This document shows, piece after piece, positions 36,501-47,963 of a stretch of DNA of 64,000 bases. The stretch spans positions 62,001-126,000 of the forward strand of contig NC_134032.1 of the NCBI RefSeq assembly GCF_964204645.1, given 5' to 3'. A model generated the notes under the pieces. The model was not told the DNA's origin and did no database searches. It saw nothing but the letters and a program-made list of their open reading frames with translations. Position 1 is the first letter of the stretch; every line of letters starts with the position of its first letter. The position numbers and the translations under genes are program-made. This stretch comes from Tubulanus polymorphus (Eukaryota > Animalia > Nemertea).

Positions 36501-37266
36501 AGTTTATTTATTTACAAGACCAACCGCGCAAACATCAAACACAGGTTCAAATCTCAACCAATGAAAATACTGCCTCAAATCACAAGGAGTTCGAATAAAC
36601 AGAAAACCCGTGATTTTATTCACTTTTAATTATTAGTATTTTATACAGCGCTATCTGAATCTAGCTACATTGATAACTTACGATATTATTTTAGGTTTAT
36701 TTGATCGGACATCTTCAAAGCTTTGTTTATCAAAGTCGATCTGGAGTCTGAGTGAAATGTGGTCACTTAAAATATACTCAAATAACACATGATGCCTTTG
36801 TCACAAGACTCTCAAACTATATACCCTGGGCCGTGACTTGAAATTGAACTCTTACTCGGAACAATTTCTTTGAGATTGTTGTTTTCAGGACCTAAAAATT
36901 GATTTCATTGGACGCTGAAATCTAGTTGATTACACAAATATTTCTTAATGTTACGACCAATCGTGTGGCCCGAAACGACAGCGGTTTTCTACGGGGTCTA
37001 AAAATAATCAGTGTCTTATTCTAATCGAACGACGTAATGTCAGGTAATGTACGGGGTTCACAGGACACGTGAAGATTATTACCTCATATCTAAAAATACG
37101 ATATATCACGTGACGGGAGTGCGGTGAAATATTGGTCGGTGAAATCTCAATTTGATCGCAGTTCAGTGTTTTACCCAATGCGCAGTAGTTTCTACGGACA
37201 TTTTTCATACAGTTTTGTCACAAACCAAGAGGTACGTTGTTTTAAATATTGTAGTCATTTTCGGGA

Positions 37267-37355
37267 ATTGTGTTTGAACAGAACGTGATTCTGATTAGGG
37301 GAAGGGAGTAGTTTTTATAAAAATACACACAGAATGAGACATCAGGGAGAATCAG
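37267..37355 (+). promoter_or_regulatory. Putative NLR promoter/first exon; ATG 37334 gives MRHQGES plus a phase-1 donor
   Basis: The block AATTGTGTTTGAACAGAACG.GATTCTGATTAGGGG...CACAGAATGAGAC...ATCAG|GT is conserved at 60480-60575 in the second locus copy. There is a TATA-like TTTATAAAA. The donor is phase 1 here, but ATG-to-donor is phase 2 in the paralog. Confidence 0.45.
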
Positions 37356-37378
37356 GTAAAAACAAAGACCTGCGTCTT

Positions 37379-39033
37379 GTTTGATATCCGCTATTTACCA
37401 CTAGAAATCGCGTGGTAGACACAACTAGAACACAACTAACGACAGTTTGATATCCGCTATTTACCACTAGAAATCGCGTGGTAGACACAACTAGAACACA
37501 ACTAACGACAGTTTGATATCCGCTATTTACCACTAGAAATCGCGTGTCAGACACAACTAGAACACAACTAACGACAGTTTGATATCCGCTATTTACCACT
37601 AGAAATCGCGTGGTAGACACAACTAGAACACAACTAACGACAGTTTGATATCCGCTATTTACCACTAGAAATCGCGTGTCAGACACAACTAGAACACAAT
37701 TAACGACAGTTTGATATCCGCTATTTACCACTAGAAATCGCGTGTCAGACACAACTAGAACACAACTAACGACAGTTTGATATCCGCTATTTACCACTAG
37801 AAATCGCGTGGTAGACACAACTAGAACACAACTAACGACAGTTTGATATCCGCTATTTACCACTAGAAATCGCGTGTCAGACACAACTAGAACACAACTA
37901 ACGACAGTTTGATATCCGCTATTTACCACTAGAAATCGCGTGTCAGACACAACTAGAACACAACTAACGACAGTTTGATATCCGCTATTTACCACTAGAA
38001 ATCGCGTGGTAGACACAACTAGAACACAACTAACGACAGTTTGATATCCGCTATTTACCACTAGAAATCGCGTGTCAGACACAACTAGAACACAACTAAC
38101 GACAGTTTGATATCCGCTATTTACCACTAGAAATCGCGTGGTAGACACAACTAGAACACAACTAACGACAGTTTGATATCCGCTATTTACCACTAGAAAT
38201 CGCGTGGTAGACACAACTAGAACACAACTAACGACAGTTTGATATCCGCTATTTACCACTAGAAATCGCGTGTCAGACACAACTAGAACACAACTAACGA
38301 CAGTTTGATATCCGCTATTTACCACTAGAAATCGCGTGGTAGACACAACTAGAACACAACTAACGACAGTTTGATATCCGCTATTTACCACTAGAAATCG
38401 CGTGTCAGACACAACTAGAACACAACTAACGACAGTTTGATATCCGCTATTTACCACTAGAAATCGCGTGTCAGACACAACTAGAACACAACTAACGACA
38501 GTTTGATATCCGCTATTTACCACTAGAAATCGCGTGGTAGACACAACTAGAACACAACTAACGACAGTTTGATATCCGCTATTTACCACTAGAAATCGCG
38601 TGGTAGACACAACTAGAACACAACTAACGACAGTTTGATATCCGCTATTTACCACTAGAAATCGCGTGTCAGACACAACTAGAACACAACTAACGACAGT
38701 TTGATATCCGCTATTTACCACTAGAAATCGCGTGTCAGACACAACTAGAACACAACTAACGACAGTTTGATATCCGCTATTTACCACTAGAAATCGCGTG
38801 GTAGACACAACTAGAACACAACTAACGACAGTTTGATATCCGCTATTTACCACTAGAAATCGCGTGGTAGACACAACTAGAACACAACTAACGACAGTTT
38901 GATATCCGCTATTTACCACTAGAAATCGCGTGGTAGACACAACTAGAACACAACTAACGACAGTTTGATATCCGCTATTTACCACTAGAAATCGCGTGTC
39001 AGACACAACTAGAACACAACTAACGACAGTTTG
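37379..39033. repeat. 66-bp minisatellite (VNTR), 25 units, two interspersed variants
   Basis: Unit GTTTGATATCCGCTATTTACCACTAGAAATCGCGTG[GT/TC]AGACACAACTAGAACACAACTAACGACA; 37379 + 25x66 = 39029. Confidence 0.97.
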
Positions 39034-39223
39034 GGCTGAAACTGATACAAAATTCACAATTACAGATTTCAGACTTTTATCGTTTTTGATGGAACTTTAT
39101 ATTGCTATACAAATTCATGTAACAAAAAACTCTAACTCTAAATCGATAACATCTAATTAGGTCAGAAAAAATGTGCTGCACTTGTTGAGATGAAATGACA
39201 GAATTCTAAATTTTGTTTTTCAG

Positions 39224-39319
39224 TAAACGTTACAATGGCGGAGAGTAATCCAGGAATAAATGCAGAAAATGTTCGCGATGACGAGGAGCAAACCGTCGAT
39301 AGACCTGCTGAGAATCTCG
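39224..39319 (+). CDS. NLR N-terminal cassette exon A (96 nt, phase 1-1): NVTMAESNPGINAENVRDDEEQTVDRPAENL; RHIM core absent
   Basis: Acceptor TTTTGTTTTTCAG, donor CTCG|GTAATT, open frame, Kozak-like ACAATGG; homologous to exons B-D. Confidence 0.7.
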
Positions 39320-40362
39320 GTAATTATAGATTTTAACCATCGGAGTTCAGTTCAGTACAGAATGATGTGACTTGAGTCTAAATGTGATCTCGTATATAAA
39401 TCCGGTGTAAAGTTTTGAGGCGAAAGTAATATATTGTCTTTAAAGATTCTGAGTACCAAAATGGACCCACCAACCCGATTGGTTTAAATCTTTGACTAAT
39501 ACTGTCAGGGTCTGGTTCTATAATCGGTATTTTGAATTATGGTCTCTTATCAGATCTGGTGACACAGTTTGTTTATCAGTCTCGAGTAGGAATAAAAATA
39601 GATTAACAGTATAAATACTGTTAACAGTAAAATAAGACCGCCGGGTGAAAGTTACCGTGATCAGATACTATCACGTTTCAATCCTAACCCTATAATTCAA
39701 AATGGGCCTGGGCCCAATTTGGCCCGACCAAAAACGTCGGACCAGGTGCGGGTCAACTGGTTCCGGTAGTGACTCACTTCGCTTTGTTTAGTATCAAGTT
39801 AGAGGTTTGCGTGTGAATGCAATCTCTAAGGCCAATTTGACTCGAACCTGATCCGTACCAATTTTGCCGCCCGGGTCAAATCGTCTCCCCGTGATCGCGG
39901 CTATAGTCGTTAGTATCGAGTTGCACAATATCAGATATAATTGATATTAGGTGGAGGATTGCTACATGTAGGAGTGAACTCATCATGGGTTAGTTGAGTT
40001 CAGACATAGGATTCAATGACTCTCCAATGTAGCAATCCTGTAATGAAATGAAATGTAAGTTAATCAAATTTCTGAACTCATTAATACCGATTTTAATTGT
40101 TTTAAGCCCGATGAAAAATATATGATGTCATTATTTTGAAGGCTTAATGTTTTATTAACATTGTCAGTAGTTCTCATAAATTTTCCTCGGCCATTTTTTT
40201 CCTACATTCCATTATCCTTTATCAGTAGCGGAAACAAAGAAAACTTCAGTCTGAATATGAGTAGAGGCTGATTGTGTAAATACTGGACACAACAATTAGG
40301 TCAGGAAAAATGTGCTGCACTTGTTGAGATAAAATGACTGAATTCTAAATCCTGTTTTTCAG

Positions 40363-40506
40363 TTCGTGGTACTATGGCACAGAGTAATCCAGGAATAAAT
40401 GCAGACAATTCTAAAATGCGTAAAAGCGGTGACAATAATACGATGACAGTGACTCAAATTATCCCTGCAGTTACTCAAGCCAGCAACAGACCTGCTGAGA
40501 ATCTCG
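40363..40506 (+). CDS. NLR cassette exon B (144 nt, phase 1-1): RGTMAQSNPGINADNSKMRKSGDNNTMTVTQIIPAVTQASNRPAENL; RHIM-like with a charged core
   Basis: Acceptor CCTGTTTTTCAG, donor CTCG|GTAATT, open frame. Confidence 0.7.
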
Positions 40507-40844
40507 GTAATTATAGATTTTAACCATCAAAGTTCAGTTCAGTACAGAATGAGTATATGGCTAGCGAGACTGGTAATATTTGTGGCTAGAATGTGTTTCA
40601 TGTAGTTTATGTCTTATTATTAACAGGCGAATACTGCTCACAAATTCATACATTTCATTATTGTTATTATTGAGATCTCTTGGGTTGCTACACTTGTATT
40701 ATAGTAAGCTTTTATCATTGTTATCTGGTCTTCTGCATGTGATATGTACTAATTTACAATTTGGCCAACCAGCATATTTCTTTCAGGAAAACTGTGCTGC
40801 ACTTGTTGAGATAAAATGACTGAATTCTAAATTCTGTTTTTCAG

Positions 40845-40982
40845 TAAACGTTACTATGGCGGCGAGTAATCCAGGAATAAATGCAGATAATTCTAATTTA
40901 AGTATAAGCGGTGACAATAATACAGTGAATCAAAATATCCACGTAGTTACTCAAGCCAGCAACAGACCTGCTGAGAATCTCG
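40845..40982 (+). CDS. NLR cassette exon C (138 nt, phase 1-1): NVTMAASNPGINADNSNLSISGDNNTVNQNIHVVTQASNRPAENL; RHIM-like
   Basis: Acceptor TTCTGTTTTTCAG, donor CTCG|GTAATT, N/Q-rich open frame. Confidence 0.72.
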
Positions 40983-41486
40983 GTAATTATAGATTTTAAC
41001 CATCAGAGTTCAGTTCAGTACAGAATGATGTGACTTGAGTCTAAATGTGATCTCGTATATAAATCCGGTGTAAAGTTTTGAGGCGAAAGTAATATATTGT
41101 CTTTAAAGATTCTGAGTACCAAAATGGACCCACCAACCTGATTGTTTTAAATCTTTGACTAATACTGTCAGGGTCTGGTTCTATAATCGGTATTTTGAAT
41201 TATGGTCTCTTATCACATCTGGTGACACAGTTTGTTTATCAGTCTCGAGTAGGAATAAAAACAGATTAACAGTATAAATACTGTTAACAGTAAAATAAGA
41301 CCGCCGGGTGAAAGTTACCGTGATCAGATACTATCACGTTTCAATCCTAACCCTATAATTCAAAATGGGCCTGGGCCCAATTTGGCCCGACCAAAAACGT
41401 CGGACCAGGTGCGGGTCAACTGGTTCCGGTAGTGAGTCACTTCGCTTTGTTTAGTATCAAGTGAGAGGTTTGCGTGTGAAGGCCAG

Positions 41487-41621
41487 TTTGTGGTGCTTTG
41501 GTACAGAGTAATGTAAATAAAGTGAATGTAAATGAATCAATGGTTCAAATGGGTGGCAATAATACGATGAATTTTTACCTTGGAGATACACAAACTATCG
41601 ACAGACCTGCTGAGAATCTCG
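41487..41621 (+). CDS. NLR cassette exon D (135 nt, phase 1-1): CGALVQSNVNKVNVNESMVQMGGNNTMNFYLGDTQTIDRPAENL; RHIM motif
   Basis: VQMGGNNTM fits the RHIM core (cf. RIPK3 VQVGDNNYL, RIPK1 IQIGAYNYM). Donor CTCG|GTAATT. The acceptor GAAGGCCAG lacks a pyrimidine tract because it is a deletion junction. Confidence 0.68.
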
Positions 41622-41770
41622 GTAATTATAGATTTCTACCATCAGAACTCGTGCTTGAGTCCAAATGTGATCCTAAATCATAAGACGGGTCCGAAGTCTT
41701 TGACCATGTCTCTAAAGATCGTTCTAAATCTTTAACTAAAATGATAGAAAATTATTTCAAGACATTCTAT

Positions 41771-41784
41771 CCACCAGGTGGCGT
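41771..41784 (+). promoter_or_regulatory. CTCF-like motif (others at 45027-45040, 48349-48363, 51361-51375 rc, 56350-56363, 58932-58945 rc, 63465-63478)
   Basis: CCACCAGGTGGCG, CCACTAGGGGGCG and CACTAGATGGCGCT match the CTCF core CCASYAGRKGGCR. Confidence 0.55.
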
Positions 41785-41989
41785 ACGATTGTTTAAGCCC
41801 AGTTGGGACTTTAGTCCCAGTTGGCTGTTGATTTCACTTTTTGCCCGTTCGTCCGTAGATGGAATCCAGTTATTTCGGATTGTCCCTGTTCACGATCAAG
41901 ATGGCTGACAGGCAGCCAGTTCATACATATTTATTGCTATTGGAAGAACTTGTGACTGACACCTACTCAAAATCTAGTAAACTTACGAT

Positions 41990-42440
41990 CAGTTTTTATA
42001 GCCACATTTCAGGCATGAATTCCTCGATTGTTAAACATTAAAAATTATATCTCAGCAACAAATTTAGTTTATGGACGACAAAATAAAATTGATAATATTA
42101 CTGTAATTAATCAAATATTATTAAATGAAACATATTTAATTACTGAACTAATAGATACTTTCCATAATGGCTCCAGAAATCCTAAAATATTCAATACAGT
42201 TTTAGATTATAAAGGTAATTTAGATGAAAAAATAATGAATATTCTTGAAACTCCTTTTAAAGAAAGAAATGATGATTTAATACTTTCTAAAGGTTACAAT
42301 GATTTGATTAACTTGAGAATTGAAAAACGAAAATAACATAATTTCAATCTTAATAATAAACAGATTACTTATAATGAAAATTCATCAAATATTGGAATTG
42401 GAATGACTTTAATCAATATCCTTTATCTTTTATAAGTATA
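41990..42440 (+). other. Very AT-rich coding-like fragment inside the NLR intron (ORF 42028-42336), possibly of viral or other foreign origin; copy at 63720-64000
   Basis: 102-aa N/I/K-rich ORF with A/T-ending codons, unlike the NLR codon usage; downstream in-register NENSSNIGIG. Confidence 0.3.
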
Positions 42441-45207
42441 TATATCTCCACAGCGCACATCAGCATAAGAAAAAGTTAAAATTTGGTCGATCGGACTCAA
42501 TATGGCCGTCCTGAGACCTTTTTGTACCTATTTTTGGTCTAAATTCCGAGACCTGTAGCTTCCTAATTGTTTGGTATTTTCTGTTGAAATTTGTGATGGG
42601 TATTTTTTTGGAAAGGGGATTTCCTGACACATCAGACAGGTTTTTTTCATCATTCAATTTTAACGTAATTTCTTGCACACATATGAAAAGAGGTGTTTTG
42701 GGGGAAAATGTCATTTTCACATAGTGGGTAAGTGATTTTAACTTAGTCTTGATATTTGGTCGTTATCAGCATTGTCATAGGACATGGAATTTCGGTCTTT
42801 TGTTCAAGCCACCAGGAGAATTAAATATTGAATTGAATAAAATTTTCCATTTATATTGGTAACTCTGCATATTTTGTAAACGCGATCAATGAATTGATTT
42901 AAAAGTTGATTTGCTTAAATCAACTCGTTGATATCAGGACCTATAAGTTTTTTTCAGTGAGCGCTCAAATAAAAGCTGTTTTCGAACAAGCTGGAACAAA
43001 TATTTTCTTTTAGCTAATTTTTCTCAATCGACCGGAAATTTTGAGACCAAATCAGCGAGCATAGAAATTTTAACGACGCCAGTCGCAGCAAGTCGCACAT
43101 GTTCTACTTACTGCGACGCGATCGTCGCAATAAACCTACGGCTACGCCCTCTCGTGACTGGGAGATGCGCGATTTTATCCAGTAATACTGGGATTCGAAC
43201 CCACAATAGTTGTGAGATGCGTTTTGAAATAATTTTTTTTGAAGGATTCGTAGAATTTCTTATCGAGAATTTAATCTCTTTCATTTGTTTTCAAGCTGCT
43301 TTGACCATAAAGACCAGTTATTTTAGCTCTAAGTCAATGACTATTACTAAATAGCTGTGTTGAAACCCAATTTTCCCTAATAGGCCAGAATTCGAAACTT
43401 TTTATCTTTGCGTGGTTTGGTTCCAATTTTAGTTACCACGTGACAATCGCAAGTACGATCCTATCTTTATATCAGGAAATTTCACAATTTTACCGGCCCC
43501 TGCTTTATTGAAATCAATAACTATGGAAATAAGGGTACTTAGCCATTTGAAAAAAATGGCAAATAAAGATATATAGGCAGTTCTAGTAAAACAAGGACAG
43601 ACTTCGGGGTTGGGAATCGGTAGTCCAGACCCTGCCTTCAAAATTGAACAATGAAAATGTAGATTAAGATTTGTAAGAATTATGAACTTTTGAATGAGAT
43701 GAGCAAAAATTCAAGTTGAATTATCGGGAAGAGGATATGAATGTTTATAACTTCACCAGCGCGCATTGTTGCTTTAAATTTATGAATGAGTGATATCATA
43801 GAAAAGTTAATTATCAGCTGAGTTCATCGATATTTTTACCTTATTTCTATCTTAATCCAATCCAGAGATATGAACGAAATAAGAAAATTAAACTGAGGAA
43901 AAAATTGGGACAAGAATTCAACAATGCGGACCCGGTGGGTACCCAAAAATGGCGCCTGGCAACTGTAAAAAGACTTATCGCGTCGCAACCGACTTACACC
44001 CGGCTTAAAATATCTCAAACTGATTTCATTTTTGTGGTCGGGTCGCGTAGCAACGCCGACCACGATGTTTTAGTGGTTCGACTTCATTTTCCCATTTTTT
44101 CTGTTATTTGACACAAGATACGTAGCTTTGTAATTAGTTCAGGGAAATTTGTTGCACTTTCCTGGGTTTATTGAAAGAACGAATGAATTTATTTCTAAAA
44201 GAAGAAATCGAAGGAATTCTGTAAAATAATAATTATTTTCCCGCCTGATGTCATATCGGGATATCCCTTGTCTTTTGCGCACCGATATGGCTGATCGACC
44301 TTTCTAAAAAAGTAATTCATACTCGTTGAAGTGTGCCGCTACTTATTGTATTGTATATCCCAGGCCTAGAAACAATTTCTTGATGAAATCTAAATTAACA
44401 AAGTATATTTGGTTTACCTGCGCAAGGACTTAAAACCAGCACTTCTTATGCGCGTAAGCAGCTAACATTTGTGTTTAGAAAACCATAGTTCATCGTGTAT
44501 CACGTGACTAATACAGTTTTCCGATCCTCATTTCAAAAGTTAAGAACTAAATGAAATGAATTGTTGTCATCTGATTAACTCAAACTGAAATTCTGAGAAA
44601 GATGAGAAAGATTAATAAACATCTTGTCCTGTGCTGAAAATTGCATGTTGATGCGCGGCGTAGTTTGCAGTATTTACTGCGGAGCTGTGATGATAGCGCC
44701 CTTGTTTTAGTAACACGTGAAGTTCACCAAAATCAATGAAGCCGTTTATCTTTAGATTAAGTATAATTTTAAAAAAAGGTGAAAAAGCCGACTTTTTTAA
44801 AGGTGACTTTTTGGAAATGTTTTCCTCGTGTAGATTGAAAATAAAGGATTTTTCCACTCGTGTAGATGGGACCTTGAATGTCTCTGATCGAACTTGTTGC
44901 TAATCCGACCCCACAGAAAGATTCTTTCTGGTGCATATTTTGTCACCGCAATCAATTGCAAAGTTTTAGCTCATGACATGATGTATGATTGTGGTGAGTT
45001 TCAGGTTCGTTGGTTTTTGTTTAAGGTCACTAGGGGGCGTTGAATAGCAGAATAACTCATTAGTTCCTTGGTACCTAGGCATATTTTGTAACTGCGGTCA
45101 ATTGTACAATTTAAGCTCATGACATTTTCTATGATTCTATGATTTTCAGGCAAAATCAGCCGCCATAGAAATTCTAAAAAAATCTCAAACTGGTTTTATT
45201 TTTACAG

Positions 45208-47963
45208 ATGTTGATCAAGTTCAGAAGAACCTGAAAGAAACGTATAAACGAATGATCGATGATGAAAATTACAAAGAGGTTTCGTGGAGCGATGAATTCG
45301 TCAATTTCAACGACTTCTTCGCCCAAGAACACGCGAAAATTCGAGCCCAAAAACGAAACCCGAAGAAAAATGAAGGAAGTGAGGAGCAGCCAGTTATTTT
45401 ACCCGATCATTTCGAGAAGCTTTTCACTTATAAAGAGAGTGATGTGAAACCCGTGTGCCTCGTAGGTGAACCCGGTATGGGTAAAACAACTCAGATTGTT
45501 AATCAAGTGTTGTCATGGGAGCGATCACCGTTTCTGAAAAGATTTCCTATGTTATTCTATATACCGTTAAATGAACTGCCCGCTGATAACGCGTGTATTT
45601 ATAAGTACATTTACAAAAATCTTTTGAGTCGAGAAATCAGAAAGGTTCTGCCGATTGATAGTTTTAAAGAATTCGTTGAGGAAAATGCAGAAAAATCGAT
45701 ATTTTTTCTAGACGGCTTCGACGAGTTGAAAAACGATAAAGCGAAAATAGACATCGTACACGTGACCAATAAATTACCGAAAGCGCATATCGTCATAACA
45801 ACACGTGAGTCCGGGGGCAGCATGATCGTCACTGATCCCAAATTCACCGTTGTATCGATATCCGGCTTCAAACAGGAAGAAGTCATCGATATTCTGGAGA
45901 GAAAATTCCCCGAGTGCAATCCATATCAGCTATTCTACAGGCTTAAAGCCGCAGCGCCACCTATATTTAAAAGTATCTACTACAACCCGCTGATACTACA
46001 TATGTTTTGTTTTCTGTATATGGACGAGGAAGAAATTACGATACCATCAAAACTCACCGATATCTACATCGATTTGACATGTTTTCTAATCAGTAAACGC
46101 GAGGGCCTCGAGTTGTCGAAGGAATGTTTTTTCCGCAATATCGGAAATTCTGAAGCGCTTAAAGAAATTTGTCAAGTCGCGTATGAGACGCTCATCGAGC
46201 ATCAAAACAGCTTCACCGAAAGTCGTCTTGAACTCGACGAATCGAAAAGGACGGCTTTGACGTGCAAAGAGATGTCGCCGCGACGGAAATCAGACCGCTC
46301 CGTCCAGCTACGGTTCATACACAAATCTGTGCACGAATTTCTGGCGGCGGTACACTCGGTCGTGCAATTCAACAACAGTAATGAAATACCCTGGAAAACA
46401 CCCTGGAATAAATGCGCGTTTGAACAACTACCGGACGAACTTGTGAAATATGGTGAATTATACCCGAGATTCATGGCAGGGCTGCTGTATCGTTACAAGT
46501 TTAACCGCGGCCTCGGTGAACTTTTCAAGACTTTAATAGATGAACATTTAAAAGCAGTCACAATAATGGATGAGTACGAGCCCTTGGTTACGGTTACTAG
46601 GGAATCGGCAGATATGCCGCTCATCCCCGATTACGAACGCTACATCGAACTCCGATCCGAAAGAACTGTTTTATCTCATCAGTTATCTGATCAGTTGTTA
46701 ATCTGCATGGATGAAGCCGACTGGCCGGACGACGCCATTAGTGAAATAGTTCCCTACATGCAGAAAATGTTGTCCGTATCTGCATATGGCAGATCGTGGA
46801 TAAACATGCTCGCAAAAATACTCGAACACAAACAATGTCAGATCGAGCTAGTTTACATACTGGGTATTCACGAACTGGAACCCGACGAATACCGCGTATT
46901 AGAAACAGCCATAGCGAGTAACACTAGTCTTCACGGTATGATAATAGATGCAGACTGGTCAGCAAAACCCGATCAGTACTTGACTATGTGTAAGAAGAGC
47001 AACAGTATAAATTGGTTTGTGCGGCTAGGGGGAATCCACACTGGTGAATGTTACAAGAAACTCAATAATGAATGGATTATTACAAGTCACGTGATTGAAT
47101 CTGAAGCTGACGCGCGGTTGATCAGTGGTGATACTAACACACACAATACAGTGGAGAGTCTGATTATTGATGTTAGTGCGGAAAGTTTAGGTAATATTTT
47201 AGTCAATATTCACAAATCGTATCCACCCATAAAACATCTATATCTCAGATCTCTGCTACGGCAGGAATATCAGCTCGATAGAAATACAATCAGAGGGCTG
47301 ATAAACATCATTCCGAGTTTGAAAACCTTATGTCTTGGTGGAGTAATATTCGATAAAGATTTGATCGGTTCGGAGGAATTGAATGATTTTAACAACACAT
47401 TAAAATCGTCAGACATCGAAACAATTCGGCTCGGACGGCAAGGACTGGACGAACTAACGACAGATGAATGTGCAGCAATGAGTGATAGTGTCGGTTCAAT
47501 GCAGAAACTAAAACGTCTTGGCATTTACGGATTTAATTTACCAATACACCGCGTTCTAGGTCACCTGCCGCGGCTGACTGTATTAGAAATAAAGTTGCAG
47601 TCAGAAGCTGATGTTGACGCACTTGTTCGGTATCTATCAACAGATGCGGTAAATCAGCTGATACAAGTCCGTATTGATAGCTGTCTCGATAGACCGGAAC
47701 AGAACAATCGTATCTTTAAACAACTAAAACACGTCTCATCAATTCGTTATTTAAAGTTCTACAGTTCACTCCGAGCGCGGATTAATACACAGCACGATAT
47801 CGATTTATTCGTCAAATCAATCGTCGAATTAATCAATAATCTTCCGCATCTTTCTGACCTGTGTATCGACTGCAGGAGCACCGACCGCGATACGACGAGA
47901 GATTACATCATATCAGAACTTAAAAAACTCAATAAAAGAGTGAGAGTAGGAATAGAGATATAG
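45208..47963 (+). CDS. NLR (NACHT NTPase + helical domains + LRR-like C-terminus), large terminal exon
   Basis: Walker A GEPGMGKTT, Walker B IFFLDGFDE, sensor-1 HIVITTR, NPLILHMFC, winged-helix FIHKSVHEFLAA, and C-terminal LxxLxL-like repeats (IKHLYLRS, LKTLCLGG, LKRLGIYG, LTVLEIK, LSDLCID). A phase-1 acceptor TTTTATTTTTACAG|AT at 45207/8 extends the frame by (D)VDQVQKNLKETYKR. AATAAA at 47966. Confidence 0.93.

Follow-up and report, generated by a model that had tools for sequence, protein, structure and literature searches.

The 64,000-nucleotide stretch of the Tubulanus polymorphus genome analysed here (contig NC_134032.1, positions 62,001 to 126,000 of the forward strand; hereafter the window, to which coordinates given without a contig label refer) contains a gene, LOC141909594, in which four short homologous exons precede a large exon coding for a NACHT domain and leucine-rich repeats (LRRs). 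The reading that we favour, with a probability close to 0.7, is that this gene encodes an expressed nemertean NOD-like receptor (NLR) whose N-terminus is not a death fold and consists instead of a string of diverged RHIM-derived modules, each on its own phase 1-1 exon, from which signalling would be nucleated by motif assembly. No death-fold domain was detected in the protein, which is 100% identical to the RefSeq entry 'uncharacterized protein LOC141909594' of T. polymorphus.

The four mini-exons, or cassettes, lie on the forward strand at 39224-39319 (A, 96 nt), 40363-40506 (B, 144 nt), 40845-40982 (C, 138 nt) and 41487-41621 (D, 135 nt). All are phase 1-1, and the coordinates, lengths and phases that the original prediction had assigned to them from the letters of the sequence proved exact, as did its quotations of their middle sequences. 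They are mutually homologous, each is open in the phase-1 frame only, and their 3' ends are alike (...RPAENL plus G, followed by GTAATT). As every exon is phase 1-1, any subset of them remains in frame. In an alignment, the cassettes open alike (MAESNPGIN(A/V)(E/D)N) and close alike ((Q)xxxRPAENL), and the variable core between these ends occurs in three states: 1) type I, hydrophobic-Q-hydrophobic-G-x-x-N-T-M, represented by exon D (VQMGGNNTMNF); 2) type II, x-x-x-G-D-N-N-T-T-x-I-x, represented by exons B (...MRKSGDNNTMTVTQII...) and C (...LSISGDNNTVNQNIHVV...); 3) a core-deleted, acidic state, represented by exon A, where RDDEE stands in place of the core. The annotated start codon is in exon A at 39235, and the Kozak-like ATG that had been proposed for A, B and C is present in each of them as ACA/ACT-ATG-G. 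The donor pattern GAGAAYCTNGGTAATT is found seven times in the window against 0.41 expected, a count reached in none of 100 shuffles; 3/7 of these sites belong to a second cassette array, that of the next paralogue LOC141909593 (61576-63315, forward strand), made up of a chimeric A-type exon (61576-61671), C' (62539-62676) and D' (63181-63315), with its NACHT exon past the end of the window. A search of the genome for cassettes placed none in the window beyond these two NLR arrays.

The introns around the cassettes are conserved as well. A ~60-nt intronic element directly upstream of the acceptor of A (39164-39223, forward strand; ..aaatgtgctgcacttgttgagat.aaatgac.gaattctaaat..tgtttttcag) is repeated before B (40303-40362) and before C (40785-40844) and is absent before D, and the same flank is found at cassettes on other chromosomes. 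The ~45 nt of intron that follow A, B and C likewise differ very little. A longer forward-strand segment after A (39320-39820) is copied after C at 40983-41483 (98.4% identity over 501 nt), where it runs directly up to the acceptor of D, and the entire unit 39628-42306 has a second copy at 60853-64000 (95.6% identity). Such a layout is what would be expected if successive tandem duplications of a single RHIM-type exon, flanking intron sequence included, had given rise to the mini-exons. In the divergence that would have followed, D would have retained a RHIM-like core (V-Q-M-G-x-x-N-x-M), B and C would have kept G-D-N-N-T and a beta-strand-like tail while losing the I/V-Q-I/V part, and A would have lost its core and become acidic. 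A rival explanation is that the cassettes are alternative first exons with promoters of their own and not internal cassette exons, as A, B and C each combine a well-placed start codon with ~60 nt of conserved upstream sequence and RefSeq begins some paralogues within a cassette. That upstream element, however, ends in a strong acceptor and holds upstream ATGs followed by stops, and the splice from A to B described below uses the acceptor of B, which makes separate promoters highly improbable.

The large exon (45208-47963, forward strand, after ...ttttacag) encodes a linker, the NACHT domain, helical domains and an LRR region of the ribonuclease inhibitor (RI) type. Its predicted phase-1 acceptor at 45208 was confirmed: G + AT gives Asp, and no stop interrupts the 917 codons of the frame before the one at 47961-47963. 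The NACHT domain scores 57.4 bits against PF05729 (cut-off 26.7; 2.1e-15), and both a Walker A motif (GEPGMGKTT) and a Walker B motif (FFLDGFDE) are present in the translation. The Pfam family LRR_14 reaches just 18.5 bits; the C-terminal 400 amino acids, modelled by AlphaFold2 with an alignment of 13 paralogues, form an alternating strand/helix solenoid (predicted local distance difference test score, pLDDT, of 81), for which the best Foldseek matches are NAIP/NLRC4, ribonuclease inhibitor and NLRP3 (E ~1e-8). From these fold matches and the NACHT domain together it follows that the gene encodes a true NACHT-LRR protein with an RI-type LRR, in agreement with the animal NLR originally proposed. 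The best NACHT matches outside T. polymorphus have only 23-26% identity, and the 268-Mb genome holds ~18 intact NACHT exons of this family and several broken ones; the family looks lineage-specific. A search of the ESM Atlas for structures resembling the N-terminus found none.

The RHIM core follows the pattern (I/V)-Q-(I/V/L)-G-x-x-N-x-(M/L/I). The core of exon D, V-Q-M-G-G-N-N-T-M, fits this consensus at all positions save the Met at the third; the corresponding residues are S-I-S-G-D-N-N-T-V in C and R-K-S-G-D-N-N-T-M in B, and A is without a core. When the whole genome was scanned in six frames with Pfam RHIM (PF12721, gathering cut-off 20 bits), only five matches exceeded the cut-off, three of which are cassettes lying before NACHT exons of the family; the same scan of 14 control genomes gave no match over the cut-off. 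With hmmscan, paralogous D-type cassettes score 22.1 and 20.9 bits, their core being KMVQIGDNNTMN (VQIGDNNTMN). Exon D is 71% identical to a paralogous cassette that passes the RHIM cut-off (E 7e-20), from which its core differs by Ile to Met and Asp to Gly. By sequence comparison, then, the cassette family is RHIM-related, though the exons of LOC141909594 taken alone miss the cut-off.

The genome contains 52 cassette matches, ~40 of them 0.3-9 kb upstream of NACHT exons of the family and a further dozen or so elsewhere. Every one of the 42 copies printed in our cassette census is open and ends in NL + xGTAA, 39/42 of them as G|GTAAT. Motif and frame have been retained on other chromosomes and in distant paralogues whose NACHT domains are only ~60% identical. 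The proteins of these distant paralogues contain IVQIGDK / IAQIGATNTINY units, as many as seven in one RefSeq protein, and begin with ...AEIVQIGDK units followed by ...IAQIGATNTINY... Repetition of a 63-nt unit within an exon is, as these reading frames suggest, a second route to multi-motif NLRs beside cassette exons; in LOC141910914 (C9:3605409-3606116), ~10 tandem 63-nt units (…AEIVQIGDK) and one full cassette form a single frame of 258 amino acids.

Spliced N-termini were analysed as RefSeq or database proteins, or exon by exon. RefSeq lists two isoforms of LOC141909594, X1 (A+B+C+large exon, 1040 amino acids; P0023) and X2 (A+B+D+large exon, 1039 amino acids; P0001), so that A is the first coding exon of both, B is in both, and C is skipped in X2. 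The neighbouring LOC141909593 has four (A'+C'+D', A'+C', A'+D' and A' alone), LOC141914657 has three forms with 3, 4 and 7 cassettes, and across the family the number of cassettes per RefSeq isoform ranges from 1 to 7, some paralogues being annotated as starting inside a cassette. According to the annotation, exon usage is thus variable, as had been foreseen, and it is combinatorial rather than mutually exclusive. Since several combinations are listed, it appears that receptors are produced with differing sets of motifs.

Contigs of four public runs were aligned over 39280-45279. Three of the runs behave like DNA, with even intron coverage. The fourth, run X4, whose kind is unstated in its record, is read as RNA because most of its intron bins are empty and it is the sole run with GT..AG joints. 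It contains an exact GT..AG joint from A to B (39319 to 40363), another from D to the NACHT exon (41621 to 45208, depth 168), and a 114-nt contig over 40385-40498 with 0 differences from exon B. In the genome census the B-type exon occurs only in LOC141909594, and the A-to-B joint and the exon B contig are therefore assignable to this gene. An unspliced contig crosses 45208 at depth 4.9. The rival start raised in the original prediction, through a phase-0 acceptor near 45150, found no support in the aligned runs. Two further X4 contigs join a different upstream sequence to the start of the NACHT exon (45207); this sequence is absent from the window and from the assembly at <=3 mismatches, and probably represents the upstream exon of another paralogue or an unassembled copy.

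The module is not confined to NLR genes. A profile of the cassette, searched against 1.84 billion representative proteins, retrieved five Tubulanus proteins and one weak match to a coiled coil (E 1e-7), which was taken as spurious; in this search the cassette is found in Tubulanus only. One protein, XP_074658355.1 (P0034; 'meiosis regulator and mRNA stability factor 1-like', 319 amino acids; C9:4828010-4829300), has two cassettes followed by NYN (2.3e-17) and RRM_MARF1 (1.4e-6) domains. The first two coding exons of its gene are phase 1-1 cassettes with the same GTAATTATAGA donors and the same intron flank as the NLR cassettes, and its NYN exon has a phase-1 acceptor and is without a start codon of its own. 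The second motif of this protein resembles the type-II NLR cassettes, and type II (xGDNNTT.I...) is a conserved second motif type of the cassettes that is also present on the NYN ribonuclease. Exon B belongs to this type, and the original suggestion that it yields signalling-dead isoforms is accordingly less likely than had been supposed. The recommended search for RHIM-bearing effectors has thus yielded, by its gene model, a candidate effector, the same cassette motif being carried by the NLR N-terminus and by a separate protein with an effector domain. At three other loci (C8:3589904-3596000, C8:2386154 and C8:3807174) proteins of 119-122 amino acids consist of three cassettes only (P0032, P0037-P0039). 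The C-terminus of one cassette-only isoform is formed by the opening residues of a sequence resembling the NACHT exon, and these proteins therefore look like truncated NLR derivatives, decoys or pseudogenes.

Given the structure of the gene, the homology of its exons, paralogous cassettes that belong to RHIM and splicing that has been seen in part, a mechanism may be outlined for an NLR of this kind. Amyloid signalling by NLRs is known from the fungal NWD2/HET-S and PNT1/HELLP systems, the latter with a RHIM-like PP motif. The N-terminal modules of the Tubulanus receptor would be short and disordered, one per symmetric mini-exon. Ligand-driven oligomerisation of the NACHT domain would bring them together, and the gathered motifs would nucleate a RHIM-like cross-beta assembly that templates or recruits proteins with matching motifs. 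Candidate partners in the same genome would be the MARF1-like NYN ribonuclease with its two cassettes, the cassette-only NLR derivatives and the few other RHIM-bearing open reading frames (ORFs). Isoform X2 would offer a type-I and a type-II motif and X1 two type-II motifs, which could alter partner range or valency, and the acidic A-type units might serve as spacers or solubilisers. A more far-reaching version, that a mobile phase 1-1 RHIM cassette wires the NLR family to matching effectors, notably the NYN ribonuclease, with splicing between type-I and type-II exons picking the partner, seems to us rather doubtful.

Several observations weigh against an NLR that signals through RHIM-derived modules. 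Exon D itself scores 8.1 bits against PF12721 (E 2.8), below the cut-off, and exons A, B and C give no match to it; the RHIM-like character originally claimed for these exons therefore holds for the paralogous D-type cassettes that pass Pfam RHIM, and not for the B and C of this gene. The cassette profile matched nothing among all PDB sequences at E <= 10, no solved RHIM structure included. Among recent cassette copies the ratio of non-synonymous to synonymous substitution (dN/dS) is ~1, with too few changes to read and no constraint visible at that depth. It could be, then, that the array is a neutral by-product, a first coding exon copied by unequal crossing-over that provides a disordered linker, with splicing noise tolerated in phase 1-1. 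Besides the dN/dS value and the lack of a RHIM score in A, B and C, this would fit the very young age of the copies (introns of recent copies are 96-99% identical), the chimeric exons and core-deleted A-type copies that are common in the family, and the several family members that are pseudogenes. It fits poorly with the retention of motif and frame in paralogues with ~60% NACHT identity and on other chromosomes, with canonical copies that exceed the RHIM cut-off, with the absence of a stop codon from all listed copies (0/42) and with the recruitment of the cassette to an unrelated NYN gene, and we consider it unlikely.

The splicing data add points of the same kind. D is identical to D', and several paralogues have the same 29-38 nt at the start of the NACHT exon, so that the D-to-NACHT joint proves the splice for the family and not for this copy. 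No joint into or out of C is among the X4 joints shown, and the contigs over exon C bear paralogue or allele letters, such that expression of C is not assignable to LOC141909594. The acceptor of D (..gaaggccag) is weak, having the AG without a polypyrimidine tract because the intron copy after C abuts D directly. The predicted in-frame splicing to the NACHT exon consequently stands on the RefSeq isoforms and on the A-to-B and D-to-NACHT joints of X4, the second shared with paralogues. The identity of D and D', the shared start of the NACHT exon and the paralogue letters over C are what would be seen if the annotated isoforms were an artefact, in which reads of near-identical paralogues were cross-mapped and each gene made one fixed N-terminus; several X4 joints also carry extra letters of other copies. 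Yet the A-to-B joint and the exon B contig bear letters specific to LOC141909594, and the four isoforms of the neighbour and three of LOC141914657, all with canonical junctions, would be hard to obtain from mis-mapping alone. As a general explanation the artefact is quite improbable; at the level of single exons, cross-mapping is possible for C and D and unlikely for A to B.

As to the partners of such a receptor, the NYN locus (C9:4.83 Mb) is not adjacent to an NLR, the nearest NACHT exons of the family on that contig being at 3.71 and 5.58 Mb. A complex prediction of NLR exons B+C with the N-terminus of the NYN protein scored 0.02, which we list here although it is no answer and counts as evidence neither way. 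Amyloid formation, the partners and a switching role of splicing are features that we infer by analogy with RHIMs and with fungal NWD2/HET-S and PNT1/HELLP.

Further RHIM matches occur elsewhere in the genome. At C3:26755420-26756721 (minus strand), a 434-amino-acid open frame scores 21.7 bits (GVQLGNSNTMT), followed by acidic KNDETERKTVD repeats. Its N-terminal 260 amino acids have no Pfam, PDB or homologue match, and a single-sequence AlphaFold2 model (pLDDT 36) is unusable; a by-eye impression of a TIR domain there was dropped, being without any such match. At C8:4548000-4557999, a stretch of ~50% GC (window ~38%) is dense in same-strand intronless ORFs of 180-280 amino acids without Pfam matches, one of which, a minus-strand ORF of 229 amino acids, ends in CVQLGNGNTM (RHIM 19.4-22.2 bits). 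Possibly the stretch is a foreign, virus-like insertion that contains a RHIM. A weaker RHIM match is present on C7.

Some members of the NLR family are annotated with other N-termini: P0007 and P0010 (C6:22.26-22.31 Mb) with an Ig-like ectodomain and a transmembrane segment before NACHT-LRR, and P0008 (C9:0.32 Mb) with a ~300-amino-acid helical N-terminal domain. P0028 and P0029, short ENA members of an NLR cluster, were looked at and are unrelated to the cassettes. Within the window, a 66-bp minisatellite (~29 copies, 97-100% identity) occupies 37247-39196 directly 5' of exon A, and the 571-amino-acid minus-strand ORF at the same coordinates is a by-product of it. In the interval that separates the two NLR genes, the open frame at 57754-58017 has a GIY-YIG-like motif (IYIGETGQTLRQRLNGH) and suggests a remnant of a Penelope-type retroelement. 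Positions 1-30000 hold 12 tandem units of ~2.0-3.2 kb (60-100% identity) without long ORFs or Rfam matches, and an Rfam search of the window found nothing.

Amyloid signalling through RHIMs in animals is known mainly from vertebrate necroptosis proteins and from the fly IMD pathway. To our knowledge, amyloid-motif signalling by NLRs has been established experimentally in fungi only, and has been predicted in bacteria. In our literature search we met no account of arrays of RHIM cassette exons, of an NLR in which such motifs are alternatively spliced, of NLRs of this kind in nemerteans or of a NYN ribonuclease bearing a RHIM-type module. If our reading is correct, a family of animal NLRs made from RHIM-derived modules would connect animal RHIM signalling with the amyloid NLR signalling of fungi and bacteria. 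The features that matter are the number of motifs, from 1 to at least 7, their multiplication both by cassette exons and by 63-nt repeats within exons, the annotated alternative inclusion of cassettes and the presence of the same module on a ribonuclease. Together they would make a tractable system in which to ask whether the specificity of signalling is set by the valency and type of the motifs, and whether an innate immune receptor can be re-wired by splicing.

The combination of RHIM and NACHT in an animal protein is already known. The RHIM-NACHT-repeat protein BF82280 of Branchiostoma floridae was described by Kajava et al. (2014; PMC4262963), who also reported tandem RHIMs in invertebrates, and to that extent the idea put forward for LOC141909594 is not new. 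As is the case for BF82280, the Tubulanus receptor is an NLR-type protein with a RHIM-type motif in the position usual for a death fold, and invertebrate RHIM proteins likewise have tandem RHIMs joined by disordered linkers (PMC4262963). Unlike in BF82280, the Tubulanus motifs each occupy a phase 1-1 mini-exon of their own, duplicated and with alternative inclusion in the annotation; the majority of copies depart from the RHIM consensus, and the family is nemertean and lineage-specific in appearance.

Mammalian ZBP1, with its several RHIMs, and RIPK1, RIPK3 and TRIF share the core pattern with the paralogous cassettes that pass PF12721 (VQIGDNNTMN), and one protein can carry several motifs in both, whereas the Tubulanus NLR is without a kinase, Z-alpha or TIR domain and its own best copy, VQMGGNNTM, is below the cut-off. 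The cRHIMs of the Drosophila IMD pathway (PGRP-LC, PGRP-LE, IMD) are, like the cassettes, divergent RHIM-like motifs of a protostome acting in innate immunity; the receptor there is a PGRP, not an NLR, and there are no cassette-exon arrays. With Dscam1 the Tubulanus genes have in common that homologous exons stand in tandem between conserved intron flanks and give an immune-type gene its isoform diversity. Unlike in Dscam1, exon usage is not mutually exclusive, isoform X1 of LOC141909593 holding both C' and D', and docking/selector pairing was not demonstrated by an RNA duplex test of donor-side against acceptor-side intron elements (z -3.3 to +0.4, no clear pattern).

A further parallel is with the fungal NWD2/HET-S and PNT1/HELLP systems, where, as in Tubulanus, a short N-terminal amyloid-type motif on an NLR also occurs on a separate protein with an effector domain. 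The Tubulanus candidate effector differs in being a NYN ribonuclease with an RRM and not a HeLo pore-former, in carrying its motif at the N-terminus and in being encoded away from the NLR, and the receptor differs in having several motifs, the set of which varies between annotated isoforms. In the more far-reaching version outlined above, which we hold to be rather doubtful, the NLR family wired to its matching effectors would represent in animals what NLR/effector amyloid signalling is in fungi.

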